A stretch of DNA of 64,000 nt, from positions 310,001-374,000 of the forward strand of contig OW569384.1 of NCBI GenBank assembly GCA_937625935.1, read 5' to 3'. A program made the translations under genes and the position numbers. Of this stretch, positions 18,968 through 44,102 are shown in pieces; the first letter of the stretch is position 1, and the number at the start of each line of letters is the position of its first letter. Below the pieces are notes generated by a model. The model was not told the DNA's origin and searched no databases. It worked only from the letters and a program-made list of their open reading frames with translations. This stretch comes from Tetramitus jugosus. Lineage: Eukaryota > Protista > Heterolobosea.

Positions 18968-21604
18968 ATGAACATGGAAACAACATCTCCATCACCTCCT
19001 TGTGACACTCTCTCACCGTCATCCATTGACAGCAGTCAAAACACCAGCACACTGTCGACCAACACATCAAAAAACTCGTGCAAACATTGTCGTGAAAGTC
19101 ATCGAAAATGTGATCGAACCTTGCCTCAATGCGTGCAGTGCACCAAGAGAGGCCTTCGATGCATCTATGAACCTTCCAAAAAGCGTCGTTCAAGAGCTGC
19201 CATGGCAGAAGAAGCTGAACAGCAATCACAACATCATCAACAACAACCAGTATTACATCATTCATCATCATCATCATCAGTATCATCGTCTGGCTATGAA
19301 TCATTTGAACAACAAGCGAAAATGGCAAAGCTCTCTCATCCAATCAACAACATCAACACCACCACTGGTGCAACAAATAGTACTGCCGCCAATCATCACT
19401 ATCTGCCGAGTGCAACCATCATGGCACCACCATTTCCACCACCATCTCATCACCATAATCTATCTCATCATCATGAACATCAACATTCTCACCATCATCA
19501 TCATCATAATCAGCAACATCCCAATCATCAATATTTCCAACCACAACTGCTTCAACCAAGTTATCTGTCTCAACAACCACAGATTCTATTGCAACTGTCA
19601 CAACCACAATCACAACCACAGCAACAACAACAACAGCAACAACAACAAGTACCACCACCTCTAGCACCGCCTCAAGCACCATCGTTGCAACAAATGGTGA
19701 GTCATCCTAATTTCAACCTTGAATCCCTAATGAAAATGAGTGGTCAACATCAAGATGCATCAACAACAACAACAACAACAACATCCATTGTGCCCAATGC
19801 TCAATCAACAGTATCACTGCCCTCTCCCTCCACAATATCAGGCTCAGCCATATCAGCCATGTTGGCACCAAACTCTGGTTCTCTCAATGATGTTCTCAAC
19901 TTGTGCTTCCAAATTCTGCCGACAGAGCATCGATCCAGTCTCACTGCACAATTCCTGTGGAGTCAATCGTCCAATCCTCCCAAGAATAAGAATGATGAGA
20001 ATGATGGTATTATCAGTGTCAATAGTGATAGGGAAGCAGAAGAAGAATTGGACAGAAAGGCGGGTGAGGCCATGTGGTTCGCTTCGCAAGCCGTATTGTT
20101 GCAGTACCTACCGTCGAGTGATCCACATCGATTCATTGATTTGGACGCAGAGGAAATGTTCTTTGACAAGATGTGTGAGAAGATTTTCTTGTGTTTCCAA
20201 TTGATTGATCGGAATAACATGAGTGGTGTTAGTGGAGATTCATCTTGTGAACCAAAGTTGGTGAGACCAGCGTCATCATCGTCTATGTCCACTACTGGAA
20301 AGGGTAGTGGGAGTGGACCATATGCTCACTTGATGCGAAAGTTTACAAGAGAACAATTGTTGGACGCTGCACAACAAATGTATCGATTGAGCAAGGAGAT
20401 TCTGTTGGATCCAAAGGTTTTCCCTCATATTTCCAATCATTTCAAGTTTGCTCAATCCTGTTCTTTCCTCGTGTTCTACTTGTTGTCTGTGGGCAATGAA
20501 CAATCGGAGACTCACGTGTTTCTAAAGGCGGTCAAGGTGTTCATGGATCGGGCCAAGGGAATTGTCGAACAGAACAGCAAGATTGTTGTGATGAACGAGT
20601 TTAGCAATGGTCATATCACCAGAAGCAGCAGCAATGGCAACATTAGTACATCCAGTGTGGACAGCAATGAAGAAGCAGAGTATCAATGCTTAGTGCTGGA
20701 TCATATGGCCGATGGGTACTTAGGTCTAAAGGTAACTCTATTTAATGATACAATCGCCTTTAACAAGATATGGATCCGAAAGTTCATCAAGCTCTCATTG
20801 AAGGCACTTGATGCCAGAAAGAATGAAGCTCATTTCGTTCAGGCACTCTCGAGGCATCAAGCAGAAGCCTTGAAGAAATTGAAAAAGCTTCTGTCAGAGA
20901 TTAATGGTACTACACTTGTGCACTGGAACAAGTTTATTAGTACGTGCCGAGAGATACGGTTATCGGTGAAATTCCATGACAAGCATCCACAAACCATCTG
21001 GAATTTCTTTATGCTGTCGTTCGAAATGTATGCATTGCAAGCAGTGTGCGTAGAGGACAATGGTGTCATGCCGAGCTTGCTTAGCACAATGCAAGTGAAC
21101 CTGGCAAACGAAATATCAGAGATTCTCATCGGTAACGTCACTTTGTCGATGGTTGCTGGATCGCGTCTGCGATTGTTTTTGGAGTTTGTCACGAGGGTTC
21201 ATATCGCACATGCTGAAGTGTTGTGTCGTTCGATATCGGCCACTAAGGAGGAAATGGAGGACGCGTTAAAGTACTTACGGATGGATGCATTGATTGTAGA
21301 TGTGATAAGAGGTCGTCACAACAATGCACGGTGTAAAGAGTTGCACAAACTTCTGCACCAACACATGGTTAGGCATACGATGACCATGGGCAGGCAATAT
21401 GATCCAAACTGGCACGATCAAATGGCTCTCGTTATATCAAAGGTGCAGATGGACCAGGAATCCAAACTACTGCCGTCTATTGACAACAAGGCAAACCCGG
21501 TTTTGTCAATACAAGATTCAGATTTCTCAGACCAAGGATTCCTGATGGAGTTGTTCGACATGGATCAGGATTTCCTGTACTTGAATGACCAATACAACAA
21601 TTAA
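18968..21604 (+). CDS. Zn(II)2Cys6 binuclear cluster transcription factor
   Basis: SCKHCRESHRKCDRTLPQCVQCTKRGLRCIY then KKRR; poly-Q/H region. Confidence 0.88.
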   Translation: MNMETTSPSPPCDTLSPSSIDSSQNTSTLSTNTSKNSCKHCRESHRKCDRTLPQCVQCTKRGLRCIYEPSKKRRSRAAMAEEAEQQSQHHQQQPVLHHSSSSSSVSSSGYESFEQQAKMAKLSHPINNINTTTGATNSTAANHHYLPSATIMAPPFPPPSHHHNLSHHHEHQHSHHHHHHNQQHPNHQYFQPQLLQPSYLSQQPQILLQLSQPQSQPQQQQQQQQQQVPPPLAPPQAPSLQQMVSHPNFNLESLMKMSGQHQDASTTTTTTTSIVPNAQSTVSLPSPSTISGSAISAMLAPNSGSLNDVLNLCFQILPTEHRSSLTAQFLWSQSSNPPKNKNDENDGIISVNSDREAEEELDRKAGEAMWFASQAVLLQYLPSSDPHRFIDLDAEEMFFDKMCEKIFLCFQLIDRNNMSGVSGDSSCEPKLVRPASSSSMSTTGKGSGSGPYAHLMRKFTREQLLDAAQQMYRLSKEILLDPKVFPHISNHFKFAQSCSFLVFYLLSVGNEQSETHVFLKAVKVFMDRAKGIVEQNSKIVVMNEFSNGHITRSSSNGNISTSSVDSNEEAEYQCLVLDHMADGYLGLKVTLFNDTIAFNKIWIRKFIKLSLKALDARKNEAHFVQALSRHQAEALKKLKKLLSEINGTTLVHWNKFISTCREIRLSVKFHDKHPQTIWNFFMLSFEMYALQAVCVEDNGVMPSLLSTMQVNLANEISEILIGNVTLSMVAGSRLRLFLEFVTRVHIAHAEVLCRSISATKEEMEDALKYLRMDALIVDVIRGRHNNARCKELHKLLHQHMVRHTMTMGRQYDPNWHDQMALVISKVQMDQESKLLPSIDNKANPVLSIQDSDFSDQGFLMELFDMDQDFLYLNDQYNN

Positions 21605-37763: not shown

Positions 37764-38822
37764 TTAATTCTTTGTTGGGGGAACATTTGACTTTCTTTGT
37801 TGATTTGATGTCGGTTGCTTAGAGTACGTGGCAGCAGCAGCCATTGCTGGATTGTATGTTCCTGGAAGACCAAACCCGAAGTTGTTCTGTTGTATGAGCA
37901 ATGGTTGGGAGTTGATTGGATTGAATGCAGCTGCGGGATTGAATGGGTTGGACCTTGCTGTGACATTTGAACTCCCAGGTGTCATCATACCTCCGGTCAA
38001 ATTTCCTGAATTGAATGGATAGGCTGTCATCGAATCAGGGGCAACCTTTGTCTGATTGACACTGTTGATATTGTGATTTGGTTTAGCTTTGCTCTTCTCT
38101 GCTTCTTGATGATGGATGAAATGAGCTATCGCAACGTGTGATGAATTGCGATTGTGCGACTTAGGTCCCGATTGACTCATTGGAGGACATGTATTCTTAC
38201 TGGCCAAAAAACGTTTAAACGAGCTAAGTGTTCCACTAGTCAGACTATTGGGCAGTGAACTTGATAGCGGAGGTGGTAATTTGTACATGACAGATCCTGA
38301 GTACTTCTTCTTAAACTCTTCCATTGTTCTCACAAAGAGTGAATCAAATATAGATAGAGAATGAGGAGGTGGATCTAACGATTTTCGAATTAAGAAATCA
38401 TTGTCAAGAGCTCTCTTGTTAAATGGTACATTGGTAATAACGGCTGAGTCTGCAGTGATTGCTGATACACCTTTTTTAGTCTTATTTGATCCCTCTGTTT
38501 CTGTTTTGTTTCTCTTATTCGACTTTGAATTCACTTCTGCTTTTTCGGTATCTGAACTGCTCTGCTTTGTGCTTTTGGATGGTCTTCCTCTCTTCCTTCC
38601 CGTGTTACTCGGAGGAGTAAAAGTAGGCGTATCTTCAACCACTGTGGGTGGTCTTCTCTTTCGGGGTGGTTTTTCAACAGGACTGTCTCTCTTCTCCTCC
38701 TGGTCAGAGGAGTCACTGTTGGCTACTATCTTCTTTGAAGCTAACTCTGCTCTCTGAATTCCGTCTTGAGAGCACAGTATCTGAGCAAAGCTCATAAGGG
38801 CACTGACACCTTCATCACCCAA
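37764..38822 (-). CDS. Hypothetical nuclear protein with AT-hook
   Basis: RKRGRPSK AT-hook, PRKRRP NLS-like motif; 352-aa ORF. Confidence 0.6.
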   Translation of the reverse strand: MGDEGVSALMSFAQILCSQDGIQRAELASKKIVANSDSSDQEEKRDSPVEKPPRKRRPPTVVEDTPTFTPPSNTGRKRGRPSKSTKQSSSDTEKAEVNSKSNKRNKTETEGSNKTKKGVSAITADSAVITNVPFNKRALDNDFLIRKSLDPPPHSLSIFDSLFVRTMEEFKKKYSGSVMYKLPPPLSSSLPNSLTSGTLSSFKRFLASKNTCPPMSQSGPKSHNRNSSHVAIAHFIHHQEAEKSKAKPNHNINSVNQTKVAPDSMTAYPFNSGNLTGGMMTPGSSNVTARSNPFNPAAAFNPINSQPLLIQQNNFGFGLPGTYNPAMAAAATYSKQPTSNQQRKSNVPPTKN

Positions 38823-39224
38823 CTGAATCTATTCTCAACAAAGTTAGTTTGGATACTTGTCATTCAAAGAATAAAAGTTCACCTACTGATTTCTCTGTTG
38901 TGGAGCTCACAACACTGCTTGGATCTCTTCCATGATTATTATCGGTTGACTCCTCTTTCCGAGAGTTCCGAGCTGTGGTTCTTTGACGAGATCTAGGTGC
39001 AGGTTGTCGTTTTACCTTGGATGTCATGTGTTGGATGAAAGACGCAATCGAACGGAGTTGATGTGTTCTTGTGGTTGTAGACACGAAAAACCCGCCAAAA
39101 AATGATTAATTTGATGCAAGATGACCATTCTGCTGAACCAATGTGGAGCGCGGATGCCGAACTCAGATCACGCTGTATACACTGTGGAGCACGGATGCCG
39201 AACAAGCCGGCACCACTGAGCATG

Positions 39225-39368
39225 CAGTCACCAATGTGTAAGTAAATAAATCAATTATAACATCCTGTTATATCAGATATATGATTATGTGATGATACCA
39301 GTTGTTTCAACCAGAGAAAAGCAGAATTTCGCCTTGAATTCAACTGTGTACTGTATCCGCGTTCCACA
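39225..39368. repeat. 144-bp direct repeat, copy A
   Basis: cagtcaccaatgtgtaag...ccgcgttccaca; identical to 41365-41508 except at 39314 and 39338. Confidence 0.97.
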
Positions 39369-39526
39369 GACAAGATGGTAATTGACAGTACCATATAAAC
39401 TTTCATGTTTTTATTAAGACGCTTCATTATTGTATTCTTTGAACTAACTTCGATCATTCATGTATCTGGTAATCCGTTTCAGGATGTACTGCATTTTGGA
39501 GAATAGTTGCATGATCTTGCTTCACT

Positions 39527-41341
39527 TCATTCAGGAGCAAATTCTTCTACTTGTATCTCTGTTGCATAAGCATCTGCTGCAATTGTTTTTGCTTTTCCAA
39601 ATTTCTTTTCCTCAATATCATACACAAATGTGCTGAGATACAACTTCAATTCTGAACTGGACTGCAATACAAGGTGATGATATGCATAGTTCTTTTCCTC
39701 CATCTGCTTAAAAGCTTTCCTGACAAGAGCTCCTACGCTATTCTTTGATTCGTCTTGCACTACTTTAAACTCAATAATATGCATTGATTTATTCAACCTG
39801 ATAAAGAGGTCCAGATTTCCATTTGATGTTGAGCCTTCTGACAAAAAAACCATATGTGGGAAATACTGTTTCAAATGCAACAAGGATAAATACATAGCAA
39901 CAGCATACACAGCTTCGATTTTCCCAGCATGTATCTCACGATTGGATATAGTCCTAAAGATTGGGTGAGGAAATGATTTGATTAATCTTCCAAGTTGTTG
40001 GAACAATTGATCCATATCTTCCTTCATCAGTGCCTCTTTCATCTTGATGATAATATCATTGTTGTCCAGCAATTCCAACTTTTGTGATAGATCACTAATC
40101 AATGTTTCTCTAACAGAATTGTTTGGTACTGTTAACTTGTTATCTTTGATTGTCAAGTATCCTGTTTCATAAAACAACTTCTGCAGAGTTCGTGTTGAGG
40201 GTTTCACCAACTCATCCAAATCTATGGACTGATCAAAACCTTTCACTTCTTGTGGTTCAATTATTTCAAGAATGGAATGAACTGTCGGATTGAATAATGA
40301 CCAGAGATGCATGGGTCTACCTCTTGTTGCCCAGAAATTTTCAAATATCTGCTTCTTCAGCAGTTGATTAATATCCCAAGGATTTAAGAGTCCATCTTTT
40401 GTAGCAGTGCAGAATCTGAATCCATTATACTCTTTGATGATCCTCTCATCCAAGTTGGTGCCATATATTCGCAATAGTTCCTCATATGCATTAGTGTATG
40501 TATTTTTCACCTCCTCCAATGTATATCCTGTCAGTGCACTAAATGAAATATCAGTGGATACATCCTCAAGATCATTCATTGATGAAAATAGATTGGTATA
40601 TGAGAACTTGGACACACCAGTAATGAACAACAAATGAATCATTGATCCAAGACCCTTGAGTGGAGAAAAGAAAGCTCTGAGCAAGTCTCGATTCTTCCTT
40701 GCGAGTGATATATTTCCCACATCTGTCATATTCTCAGCAATTGCTTTCGTAATTGGGCTATCATATTCGTCAATCAAAATGATAATTCGTCCAGATTCTG
40801 ACTGACTAGCAAAATAGCGAACAGTCAATTTTAGCATCCGTACAATACTCCCCTTTAGCCGAAACTCTTCTTCAACATCTTCAGGAACTTGCAATCCATT
40901 CAGTTTGAAGCTATTCATGAGCTCATCAAATAATTCAGTAACGAGGTTATGTGCATCTATCAAAGAAAGATCCAAATGTAACACAGGCATTCTTTTCATG
41001 AACAAGTCCTCAGAATTGTAGATCTCAAATTGTTGTTGGTTGTTCTCTAGTGGTCCAAATGCTTCTCTATTTCCCAACGCAACAAGTTTCATTTGCTCAA
41101 TAGTCAACGACTTTCCCATCTTTCTAGGTCTTGTGAAGAAAATCTTCCTACCATGTTGTAATCTCATCAGTGCTTCAATCAACTTTGTTTTATCAACAAA
41201 CTTTGCACCTCTTGTTGAACGCTCTAGATAGAAGTCATGAGTGGTTGGTATCTTCTCGAGTGATTGATTGCGTTGTTGAGTCTTAAAATTGATTGAGTAG
41301 AAGAAACAGTTTACTCTTTGCAAGGTACGTGTTCTCAGCAT
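39527..41341 (-). CDS. AAA-ATPase-like + C-terminal PD-(D/E)XK nuclease protein (bacterial-type)
   Basis: FVDKT, RPRKMGKS (Walker A), ILIDEYD (Walker B), FITGVSKF, LNPWD, FWATRG, YETGYLTI, VPNNSV, GNLDL..IIEFK, A..Q..EKNY; intronless; ATG 41341. Confidence 0.9.
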   Translation of the reverse strand: MLRTRTLQRVNCFFYSINFKTQQRNQSLEKIPTTHDFYLERSTRGAKFVDKTKLIEALMRLQHGRKIFFTRPRKMGKSLTIEQMKLVALGNREAFGPLENNQQQFEIYNSEDLFMKRMPVLHLDLSLIDAHNLVTELFDELMNSFKLNGLQVPEDVEEEFRLKGSIVRMLKLTVRYFASQSESGRIIILIDEYDSPITKAIAENMTDVGNISLARKNRDLLRAFFSPLKGLGSMIHLLFITGVSKFSYTNLFSSMNDLEDVSTDISFSALTGYTLEEVKNTYTNAYEELLRIYGTNLDERIIKEYNGFRFCTATKDGLLNPWDINQLLKKQIFENFWATRGRPMHLWSLFNPTVHSILEIIEPQEVKGFDQSIDLDELVKPSTRTLQKLFYETGYLTIKDNKLTVPNNSVRETLISDLSQKLELLDNNDIIIKMKEALMKEDMDQLFQQLGRLIKSFPHPIFRTISNREIHAGKIEAVYAVAMYLSLLHLKQYFPHMVFLSEGSTSNGNLDLFIRLNKSMHIIEFKVVQDESKNSVGALVRKAFKQMEEKNYAYHHLVLQSSSELKLYLSTFVYDIEEKKFGKAKTIAADAYATEIQVEEFAPE

Positions 41342-41364
41342 TGTTTTTTTATTAGTTGAAGGTT

Positions 41365-41508
41365 CAGTCACCAATGTGTAAGTAAATAAATCAATTATAA
41401 CATCCTGTTATATCAGATATATGATTATGTGATGATACCAGTTGTTTCAACCATAGAAAAGCAGAATTTCGCCTTGATTTCAACTGTGTACTGTATCCGC
41501 GTTCCACA
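41365..41508. repeat. 144-bp direct repeat, copy B
   Basis: 142/144 identical to 39225-39368; offset 2140 bp. Confidence 0.97.
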
Positions 41509-41621
41509 ACCAAGAAGACCACTAATGTAAACAGGTTTCAAATATGAGATGTGGATAACTTCCAATTCTTCTGCAAGCTCCTGGATCACAAACGGAGAAG
41601 ATTTCCCACCAGAAAAAAAAC

Positions 41622-44102
41622 ATGAACACAACCGTTGTCAGAAAGAGCATTGTGGCTTGTTTCGACTCATTCAAGGATTGTTTGAGTGCTCAAGAGATTG
41701 GATCCATTGTGTTAAACTCCCTGGCCAAACACTCACCATATATCCATCAAGAAACACTGGCTGCTGATCATCATACCAACCATCATAAGCTGGCGTTTGA
41801 TCTAGTCAATGTTCCTCTATCCGATGGTGGTGAAGGATTCTTGCATGCATTCCAACAAACCCATTCTGAGAATGAGTATGAGATGCGATCACATCGTGTA
41901 GGTCATGTGATGGAATCAAGGAGACTCAGAGGTGAAACTGTGGATGCACAATACATGTTATTGAAGAAGAACGAGGGATTGAATGGTGGTGCGAGTGAGG
42001 TAGCAGTCGTGGAGAGTGCCAAGTGTGTTGGTATTGAGTTGGTGCCTGTTGTAGAGAGAAATCCGATGCATACGAGTACGTTTGCGTTGGGAGAGCTGAT
42101 CAAGCATATTGTTTTCGACCAAAAGATTCGTCATTTGCGTGTGGGTCTAGGAGGTAGTGCAACCAGTGATGGTGGACTTGGACTGTTGCAAGCATTAGGC
42201 GTTAAGCTTTGGTGTCTAAACGAGCAAACGAACGAGCGATTTGAACCCGATGTATTTTATGGTCGACATTTGCCAATGTTGGTTGATTTCGATGCAAGTG
42301 AGATGATTGAATCTCTGCCTGATGATATCCGTATGGAGTTGGCCTGTGATGTGACCAATCCCTTTTTAGGTCCTCTCGGAGCTGTTCACGTGTTCTCTAA
42401 ACAAAAGGGAGCCGTTGAGCAGACTATGAGAGATATGTTGGAGAGTGGTATGCACAAATTAAACAGCTTGTACCAAGAAAAATTTGGTATTGATTTGTCT
42501 TTGGTCGCTGGTTCTGGTGCTGCTGGAGGGATCAGTGGAAGTTTGTATGCTGTCCTCAGACAAAAGAATACTGAAGCTGTAGCAATGAGAAAGGGAATTG
42601 AAATCATTGCAGACAGTGCCAACTTGAGGGAAAAAATTGCCAGAGCAGAATTAGTACTAACTGGCGAGGGTTCCTTTGATGGTCAATCGAGTGCAGGAAA
42701 GGTTGTATCACTCGTCCAAGAAATTGCATACGAACACAACGTTCCGTTAGTAATTATATGTGGTCAAAGTCATGTTAATGATTTAGGCAAATTTTCACAT
42801 AACACTAAGGTCCTTCCTCTGGTGCCTGATCAATTCTCTTTTGAAGAATCGATGAAGAACACAAGGAATTGTTTAGACTTACTTGTTCAAAGAAATGTAC
42901 ATCAATTCCGTTTCAAACCTTATCACACTGTGTATAATCTATCCTTCTCTACACCTCGAAGATATCGAATTGATCTCGAAACAAAACCCGAAGAACGGTG
43001 GGCTCCCATTATCAAGGATTATTTGCCTCAACTGCATGTGTTTAAGAATTATCTCATGGATAATATGAGAATCGAGTTTGGAAGTGTGAAACTTGCTTCT
43101 GCTATGCAATCAATTGCTGGATGGGCTAGTAAGAACATCTATACACCATCTGAAATCGTACGGGAATTAAAAGGAATAGCGGCCATAACTCAGCAAGCTT
43201 GTGGCTTGAACTATGACGATTTGCTCACGTTAAATATGGGGTACAATTGGCTTGCCCATTGTACAAGTGCTGTATGCTTGGATCACTCCACGGATCATCC
43301 TCCCTATCACTTCAGAAATATGGATTGGGATCTGGAGCTGAGTAGAGAGCTACGAAATATGACGATTGACGTGGAGTTCTATCAGAACAACAAGCCTCTG
43401 TATATTATGACGACATGGGTCTGCTTTATTGGTGCCACAACAGGTATGAGATATAGTGAGGAAATGTCAACTGACTATCCAAAGGGATACAGCATATCGA
43501 TTAATTATCGTAAGACAGATGAGTCAGCTGGTATTATGAAGAACTTTGTGTCAGGTGTTTGTTCCTATTGGCCAATTGAAATGTTGCTGCGTACTGTTCT
43601 CAGTCAAGAGGACACATTCAGTCGAGCACTATATAAGCTAAGCAAGGAAAATGTAATGGCTCCTTGTTATTTAACAATATGTGGATCTACTAATAATGAA
43701 GGTGTCATTCTCACTCGAGGACGACACCGTGATGAGAAGCGACTTCAAATTCATCCAGAAAGAACGCCATTCATAGTGCAGACGAACATTGATCATTGGA
43801 TGAAAGAAGTAGACAGAGTATGGGCAGGTACAGATATGCTTCTCCACAGTGCCATAGATAGAAAAATTGCCGCAACAAACTACTTAACCAACGGTAGACA
43901 ATCATCCATCGAAAACCATTACGACCAGAGTGAATTTGCTGTCAGAGTCGGTTTTGGTTGTCTGGCCAATTACCCGAACATGAACCCTGAAACAATCTAC
44001 ATGAATGTGATGAGACCTGCCACAGGCTTATACTTGTCACGTGTGGCTCATAACCCAATGGATCAGCAACAATTCGACCAGTTCCAACAAGACCATACGT
44101 GA
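41622..44102 (+). CDS. Glycerate kinase (GlxK/GarK type) - acid ceramidase/NAAA Ntn-hydrolase fusion
   Basis: DSFK, PLSDGGEG, GLGGSATSDGG, CDVTNP, GSGAAGG, TGEGSFDGQS; then IDL..PEERW, ELKGIA, HCTSAV, RNMDW, QTNIDHW in one uninterrupted 826-aa ORF. Confidence 0.88.
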   Translation: MNTTVVRKSIVACFDSFKDCLSAQEIGSIVLNSLAKHSPYIHQETLAADHHTNHHKLAFDLVNVPLSDGGEGFLHAFQQTHSENEYEMRSHRVGHVMESRRLRGETVDAQYMLLKKNEGLNGGASEVAVVESAKCVGIELVPVVERNPMHTSTFALGELIKHIVFDQKIRHLRVGLGGSATSDGGLGLLQALGVKLWCLNEQTNERFEPDVFYGRHLPMLVDFDASEMIESLPDDIRMELACDVTNPFLGPLGAVHVFSKQKGAVEQTMRDMLESGMHKLNSLYQEKFGIDLSLVAGSGAAGGISGSLYAVLRQKNTEAVAMRKGIEIIADSANLREKIARAELVLTGEGSFDGQSSAGKVVSLVQEIAYEHNVPLVIICGQSHVNDLGKFSHNTKVLPLVPDQFSFEESMKNTRNCLDLLVQRNVHQFRFKPYHTVYNLSFSTPRRYRIDLETKPEERWAPIIKDYLPQLHVFKNYLMDNMRIEFGSVKLASAMQSIAGWASKNIYTPSEIVRELKGIAAITQQACGLNYDDLLTLNMGYNWLAHCTSAVCLDHSTDHPPYHFRNMDWDLELSRELRNMTIDVEFYQNNKPLYIMTTWVCFIGATTGMRYSEEMSTDYPKGYSISINYRKTDESAGIMKNFVSGVCSYWPIEMLLRTVLSQEDTFSRALYKLSKENVMAPCYLTICGSTNNEGVILTRGRHRDEKRLQIHPERTPFIVQTNIDHWMKEVDRVWAGTDMLLHSAIDRKIAATNYLTNGRQSSIENHYDQSEFAVRVGFGCLANYPNMNPETIYMNVMRPATGLYLSRVAHNPMDQQQFDQFQQDHT

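Follow-up and report, generated by a model that had tools for sequence, protein, structure and literature searches.

What are the two near-identical direct repeats that bracket a bacterial-type ATPase-nuclease gene of Tetramitus jugosus, and has the gene between them travelled with them? The locus lies in a 64,000-nt window, the whole stretch of DNA analysed here (GenBank OW569384.1, positions 310,001 to 374,000), and coordinates without a contig name are window positions. The first-pass annotation, made from the letters alone, had proposed a candidate mobile cassette. Both repeats (each 144 bp) are same-orientation copies of a short non-coding transposable element, here called E, a small family of this heterolobosean amoeba that resembles miniature inverted-repeat transposable elements (MITEs). 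On balance, and by a narrow judgement, we read the two copies (A and B), with the 2-kb segment between them, as a composite transposon of 2367 bp (39142-41508), in which the ATPase-nuclease is most likely cargo and not the engine of movement.

Element E moves on its own

The two repeats (39225-39368 and 41365-41508) agree at 142/144 positions in pairwise alignment, with mismatches at 39315 (G/T) and 39339 (A/T), and a repeat search returned them as a two-copy direct repeat (39225-39375 vs 41365-41515; spacing 2140 bp). BLAST of a 146-mer against the whole 26.35-Mb assembly gave two matches only, both at the locus (E-values 1e-70 and 1e-66). E itself is ~186 bp long, starts with TGTGG and ends with CCACA. 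It is present at six or more loci with unrelated flanks, homology being confined to the ~186 bp, and has ~8 copies in total. Each full copy terminates in 14-bp inverted repeats (TGTGGAACGCGGAT...ATCCGCGTTCCACA), imperfect in older copies, and a 21-mer from the left end occurs nine times in the genome, vs 0 for a control pattern. A 24-nt core near the left end (CGGATGCCGAACAAGCCGGCACCA), with a 5-bp hairpin inside, is perfectly conserved at six loci (window 39192-39215; C1:523197, C19:114009, C21:118737, C39:113999 and C46:239500) and could be a transposase-binding or regulatory site. The outermost 9 bases and the middles vary strongly among copies. Those at C46 and C21 are 99.5% identical over 185 bp, with no similarity beyond.

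By inspection, E holds only short open reading frames, which differ between copies. At C1 and C46 it lies ~100 bp upstream of a start codon, and here it is upstream of both the ATPase gene and a neighbouring gene, Z. E was also considered as a known RNA gene, and this was rejected (Rfam, no match at an E-value <= 1 on either strand; ARAGORN, none). In old copies the inverted ends decay independently, without covariation; as there are no compensatory changes in terminal pairing between copies, they are inverted repeats and not an RNA stem. A 41-bp tandem repeat gives copy A a doubled left end (left units 39142-39162 and 39183-39203), and the first 14 bases of each 21-nt left unit are the reverse complement of the repeat's last 14.

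A scan of JGI metagenomes with the 24-nt core returned a single contig, Ga0256889_1036229 (L047), while one with a 23-mer from the repeat returned nothing. L047 carries an E of the C46/C21 subfamily between two copies of TGTATG. Its flanks match C9:288081-288500 and C9:288495-288898, which are adjacent in the assembly and overlap by exactly the six TGTATG bases, with no E between them. L047 (filled) and C9 (empty, with a single TGTATG at 288495-288500) therefore constitute a filled/empty pair with a 6-bp target duplication, showing that E moves on its own. Further target duplications are GACGGT at C46 and ATAAA at C39, with none at C1 or C21, so that those of E measure 5-6 bp. In the C21 copy (C21:118729-119024), E is joined to 111 bp of C9-type flank, with 100% identity to L047. 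Since this E carries a C9-type flank, it has relocated with neighbouring DNA at least once, or else a filled C9 allele has recombined into C21. No autonomous partner was recovered: a genome-wide search for the 14-mer with <=1 mismatch gave E copies plus two isolated hits only, and none of the six loci checked among 14 integrase (rve) hits was similar to E.

Two copies of E around an ATPase-nuclease gene

The outer ends of the pair (left of A, right of B) are 13/14 complementary, with ACCAA directly outside both. As A and B have the same orientation, these ends face outward as an inverted pair. Single copies do not have matching flanks (ACCAA/GACAA for A; AGGTA/ACCAA for B in a groundwater metagenome, X4). 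The doubled left end is common to A and B (that of B being seen in ENA contig L016) and is found in no other family member. In the repeat alignment, the 7 bases just right of A match those just right of B at 5/7 positions. Features of the locus are as follows.

37764..39026, minus strand: host gene Z, serine/proline-rich, without a Pfam family (open reading frames and Pfam search)
39137..39141, no strand: left putative 5-bp target-site duplication of the composite, ACCAA, read from the sequence and identical to 41509-41513
39142..39368, plus strand: copy A of element E, full length (core 39183-39368; family homology starts at 39183 and stops at 39368)
39225..39368, plus strand: repeat copy A as first annotated, corresponding to positions 43-186 of element E
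39369..39526, minus strand: 3' untranslated region of the ATPase-nuclease gene, with AATAAA at 39415-39410
39527..41341, minus strand: intact DUF1703-type gene, AAA-ATPase_like plus C-terminal PD-(D/E)XK nuclease, 604 aa
41342..41364, minus strand: 23-bp leader, from the start codon to copy B
41365..41508, plus strand: copy B of element E, without element positions 1-42 in the assembly, right inverted repeat intact
41509..41513, no strand: right putative 5-bp target-site duplication, ACCAA
41622..44102, plus strand: glycerate kinase fused to an NAAA/acid-ceramidase-like domain, host gene, divergent from the ATPase gene

Much of the original description of this layout holds. Alignment and open reading frame agree on 144-bp repeats at 142/144 bracketing one intronless gene, with copy B 23 bp upstream of its ATG and copy A 159 bp beyond its stop. 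The gene had also been called AT-rich-looking, and this was not borne out by its composition (G+C 0.38-0.40 at gene and repeats vs 0.39-0.45 over the window). The open frame (39527-41341, minus strand) encodes 604 aa from the ATG with no internal stop and no intron needed. The proposed AAA-ATPase_like plus PD-(D/E)XK architecture was confirmed by a match to Pfam AAA-ATPase_like (PF09820; E-value 3.4e-30, residues 43-252) and by nuclease residues that are invariant in alignment. In an alignment with paralogs and bacterial homologues, RPRKMGKSL and ILIDEYD fall on invariant columns; Walker A GKS, DEYD, E502, G508, D511 and E524-x-K526 are all retained, the nuclease residues being invariant in 14 aligned eukaryotic and bacterial members. 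As judged from these columns, the active-site residues are intact. PDDEXK_9 (PF08011) did not reach the E-value threshold of 0.01 on this protein, and is precomputed for nearly all homologues. Defence-system and NCBIfam models gave no match to the protein, and an ESM Atlas search gave the same family only. The nearest non-self relatives are ~30% identical and mostly on metagenome contigs; those with names are bacterial, including Chlamydiia and Babeliales.

A 1956-nt contig from a soil metatranscriptome (run X7) spans the coding region, and the gene is therefore transcribed. This contig ends at ~39390, ~20 nt past the AATAAA, so that the transcript stops ~20 bases short of copy A and not within it. 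Between the assembly and X4 there are 13 coding differences, nine of which change an amino acid. All are in codons 283-592 (39530-40495), vs none in ~600 bp of the ATPase domain on the same contig, a C-terminal clustering that points to selection, relaxed or diversifying, or else to a conversion tract.

Contigs of the assembly carry TTTGGG repeats at both ends and hence represent complete small chromosomes. The gene family comprises three intact paralogs (68-72% aa identity), two of them at the two ends of C13, 8-10 kb from the telomere, and one at the C49 right end. There are also several broken copies, among them a pseudogene at the C41 left end and a fragment at the C47 right end. The window gene is internal on C41, 83 kb from the chromosome end, while its paralogs are mostly subtelomeric; the nearest is the C41 left-end pseudogene (88% nucleotide identity). 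Homology with the paralogs is limited to 39530-41292, corresponding to codons 17-604. Codons 1-16 have no counterpart in the paralogs or anywhere else in the genome, no flank homology with them was detected outside codons 17-604, and the untranslated flanks of the window gene have no other match, and so no donor site, anywhere in the genome. At seven other family loci (three with intact genes, four with fragments) neither flanking direct repeats nor E were found, and the idea that paralogs might share the flanks of the window gene was not substantiated. As separate observations on C13, its two ends share a 7.7-kb terminal block in inverted orientation (99.4% identity), followed by the DUF1703 gene at 94.5% (C13:1-10000 vs C13:557007-577006), and the block holds a tandem array of ~102-bp period at ~5.1-6.4 kb from the end.

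Four runs were compared over window positions 38000-43000, including X4, which is ~1.3% diverged from the assembly. The gene is present in 4/4. Depth in X4 is 19.7 over the gene vs 19.2 in the left flank and 16.4 in the right, and X4 contigs connect the repeat end both with the gene's 3' side and with the right flank. Recovery of these junctions in an independent metagenome means that the layout is not an assembly artefact, a point on which the first-pass annotation had asked for a check. Copy A in X4 has a single left unit (contig end at 39162), the 41-bp tandem duplication being absent. The X4 leader has 5 extra bases, and its letters differ from the assembly beyond 41364. An X4 contig runs off the 5' end of the gene into 26 letters unlike the assembly, the last 8 of which, with an exact k-1 = 30, chain to a contig like L016. 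The order in X4-type strains appears to be gene, 48 bp and full-length copy B, the assembly having lost 109 bp there. X4 also has an undeleted right end of E with its flank.

L016, which carries the neighbouring gene at 98% identity, has a copy-B-type E with deletions of 53 bp (internal) and 54 bp (right end). It keeps the left part of E plus the 20-bp spacer of the doubled left end, with ~87% identity to copy A, and the spacer at a copy-B-type element points to exchange between A and B. Similarity of the left part of L016 to the copy A flank is only 87-90%, and X4 holds the true left flank at 98.5%. A joint 39358->41553 in X4 and X14 (2194-bp skip) was examined as a possible empty site and discarded, as 39358 corresponds to 41498 in copy B and L016 shows the 54-bp deletion. 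The unit is common to strains 1-2% apart, so it is older than their split and the deletions have been gathered since. Divergence between the copies is 1.4% in the 144-bp part vs ~10% in the left part, a marginally significant contrast which suggests gene conversion between them. Two stretches have no counterpart in this genome, namely the letters after the gene in X4 and the DNA flanking an additional E copy that X4 and X14 both show. In run X3, many positions in the same interval have two letters at about half depth (e.g. 38559, 38634 and 38968) and contigs are short, which would fit an assembly collapsed from a heterozygous diploid or from a mixed culture.

Of the neighbouring genes, Z probably starts at 39026, with a short intron near 38823-38880, and copy A lies ~116 bp upstream of this inferred start. 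The glycerate kinase-NAAA fusion has one metagenome relative at 98%; other matches have <=36% identity over at most about half of the query, none with NAAA, and the fusion seems private to the lineage. Elsewhere in the window, a conserved enzyme, homogentisate dioxygenase, is closest among named matches to those of Naegleria, Acrasis and Willaertia (61-64% identity), which places the host among heterolobosean amoebae, with no close relative sequenced. Positions 18968-21604 encode a protein of 878 aa whose Zn(2)-Cys(6) binuclear cluster domain is of fungal type. Near-identical DNA was found in soil, groundwater and other metagenomes and in soil metatranscriptomes.

A probable composite unit and the alternatives

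We infer movement of the composite as a unit from the single 5-bp duplication at its outer ends. A transposase would use the outer ends, the left one of copy A and the right one of copy B, to cut out or copy the whole unit. Insertion would then have taken place in the interval separating gene Z from the glycerate-kinase gene, with duplication of ACCAA. The cargo would be an intact, transcribed DUF1703 gene from a mostly subtelomeric family that came in lacking its native 5' end, and its promoter is probably supplied by copy B or by DNA further out. Once inserted, the copies would have exchanged sequence by gene conversion and gathered strain-specific deletions. Untranslated flanks that have no donor copy in the genome fit cut-and-paste movement, and the replaced 5' end, which lies 23 bp away from copy B, is in keeping with relocation of a copy that relies on its new surroundings for transcription. 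Without 39142-41513, the divergent starts of gene Z and glycerate kinase would lie ~220 bp apart, a normal spacing for this compact genome. In this form part of the mobile-cassette proposal stands, namely repeats that are mobile-element DNA, matched outer inverted ends and a 5-bp duplication, and mobility driven by the gene is not supported.

Several points weigh against movement of the whole. The duplication is one 5/5-base match, for which our own estimate of chance agreement is ~0.1% per trial and ~0.5% over alternative boundaries, and a lone resident E with an ACCAA duplication, expanded in place, yields the same outer flanks. No second composite copy was found in the genome, and no empty ACCAA allele in the four runs or L016, the comparison with related strains that had been suggested at the outset. 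An autonomous partner was likewise not found, the E-like 14-mer being nearly confined to E copies and none of the six loci checked among the 14 integrase hits resembling E. The two best-defined solo insertions made 6-bp duplications, though in another subfamily. Full-length copy B in X4 was pieced from contig ends (8-base overlap plus exact k-1 arithmetic) and is not one molecule, and the 5/7 agreement right of A and B is also explained by segmental duplication or a microhomology junction.

Assembly of the arrangement in place is a possible, if clearly weaker, contender. One E would have sat at ACCAA between gene Z and glycerate kinase, the ATPase segment and a second E being added later at its edge. 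They could have come in through homologous (Campbell-type) integration of a circle that held E together with the gene, in part the circle crossover of the first-pass annotation. Alternatively, repair of the gap left by an excised E may have gone wrong, each broken end copying E from the sister chromatid while the gene was captured as filler. The same outer ACCAA flanks would result, the 5/7 similarity may mark a microhomology junction, and A and B are mutually closest and both have the odd doubled left end; set against this are the greater number of steps, the need for a donor that already had E beside the gene and the lack of an intermediate allele in the four runs or L016. We consider it unlikely that the ATPase gene is a long-standing resident around which E inserted twice, independently, with ACCAA matching by chance. 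Elsewhere E does land in short intergenic regions next to genes (at C1 and C46 the start codon is ~100 bp away), and a 5-base match may arise by chance. However, neither copy has a target duplication of its own although the copies are 1.4-5% diverged, both have the same private doubled left end, and the first 16 codons and both untranslated flanks are unlike every paralog, which fits a relocated, 5'-truncated copy.

Retrotransposition has very little to recommend it. E would be a very short long terminal repeat (LTR), its other copies solo LTRs, and the unit a non-autonomous retrotransposon like terminal-repeat retrotransposons in miniature (TRIMs) or large retrotransposon derivatives (LARDs). 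Same-orientation direct repeats, TG...CA termini of the TGTNR type (PMC2836005), a 5-bp duplication around the unit and 14 integrase-domain hits in the genome agree with this. Inspection in both orientations located no TGG within 5 bases of the inner edge (nearest 7; tRNA 3' ends were not compared) and no purine tract, and no reverse transcriptase or integrase is encoded inside the unit. The LTR element suggested in the first-pass annotation was set aside on this lack of a primer-binding site, polypurine tract, reverse transcriptase or integrase. Moreover, the gene transcript ends ~20 bases before copy A and not inside it, the two copies are unequal in length in every strain, and no examined integrase locus resembles E.

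The original proposal, in which the ATPase-nuclease is itself a selfish or defence element, spreading together with 144-bp repeats of its own and excised by recombination between them, is barely credible, as is an artefact or collapsed array. The family does have many copies and pseudogene pieces, its paralogs share little beyond the coding region, and the composite transposon of Tribolium Medea is reported to hold a DUF1703 gene (PMC6387759). Yet none of the paralogs has E or any flanking repeat at the seven other family loci, no empty allele was found, and the E family occurs apart from the gene and moves without it; what looked like a 2194-bp skip is a 54-bp deletion in copy B. Since the paralogs are mostly subtelomeric and without E, self-mobilisation by the ATPase-nuclease is not supported. 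Equal depth of gene and flanks in X4, and junctions in an independent sample, contradict an artefact or collapsed array. A recent circle insertion or a collapsed tandem array, both raised early, is also at odds with a unit present in strains 1-2% apart, even depth in X4 and a nearest paralog at 88%.

Relation to known systems and meaning

The composite transposon favoured here, with a newly defined MITE family at its ends, is most likely a composite or macrotransposon of known kind. In bacterial Tn5 and Tn10, maize Ac/Ds pairs and the Drosophila foldback-flanked 'TE', transposase uses the outermost ends and the intervening DNA moves. The locus resembles these in using the outer ends of two copies, with one duplication around the whole, and differs in that unit movement would be read from one 5-bp duplication only. 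Composite transposons are textbook examples in bacteria and rarely documented in eukaryotes, and we know of no example in the literature of a MITE-like pair carrying an intact expressed gene. E is like MITEs and Pack-type elements in being short and non-coding, with inverted repeats, a target duplication, unrelated flanks, presence/absence between strains and a foreign flank in one copy. It differs from MITEs in its ~8 copies, in a 24-nt core that is perfect while the outermost 9 bases vary, and in having no known autonomous partner. Pack-type elements hold gene fragments within one element, whereas a whole gene lies between two here. TDD-4 and TDD-5 of Dictyostelium make 5-bp duplications, and Ginger and LTR termini are TGTNR...CA (PMC2836005). 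In the Ginger2/Tdd superfamily an integrase-like DDE transposase recognises TGTNR ends, with duplications of 4-5 bp. The TGTGG ends of E fit TGTNR and its duplications are 5 or 6 bp, a resemblance only, as Ginger2/Tdd elements have inverted repeats of 45-300 bp and an integrase-like transposase and no transposase is linked to E.

A close likeness is to Medea of Tribolium castaneum (Lorenzen et al. 2008, via PMC6387759), in which two DNA-transposon copies bracket cargo that includes an intact bacterial-type DUF1703 gene. Medea is flanked by Tc1 transposons, and here the flanking units are non-autonomous, of ~190 bp, with a single-gene cargo and no known drive or killing phenotype. The Medea insertion is also said to be much larger, with several genes. 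In some symbionts DUF1703 genes form recombining multi-copy families, with an expansion to 25 paralogs in Cardinium cCpun (PMC6387759). The amoeba family shares with these bacterial genes the two-domain architecture and motifs and the multi-copy, recombining, fast-diverging habit, and differs in being nuclear and mostly subtelomeric, with eukaryote-specific insertions and presequence-like N-termini.

An enigmatic gene with private 144-bp repeats becomes, on the composite reading, a gene between two mobile short elements, with the footprint of a single insertion. E adds a new family of small elements, with a proven filled/empty pair, to a heterolobosean lineage for which no repeat library has been described. 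The locus would be a second, independent association of DUF1703 with a composite transposon after Tribolium Medea, and a hint to the role of the family. Carriage of a whole expressed gene by a MITE pair, if true, would offer a route out of subtelomeres and new promoters in compact protist genomes. A bolder and rather doubtful extension is that DUF1703 genes of the amoeba are conflict genes (defence or toxin-like, a role also suspected for the Tribolium Medea copy) repeatedly picked up and relocated by small transposons, the locus being a still-mobile E-pair composite with an E-supplied promoter. Were this so, the MITE pair would be a natural vehicle of gene transfer within, and perhaps between, protist genomes.

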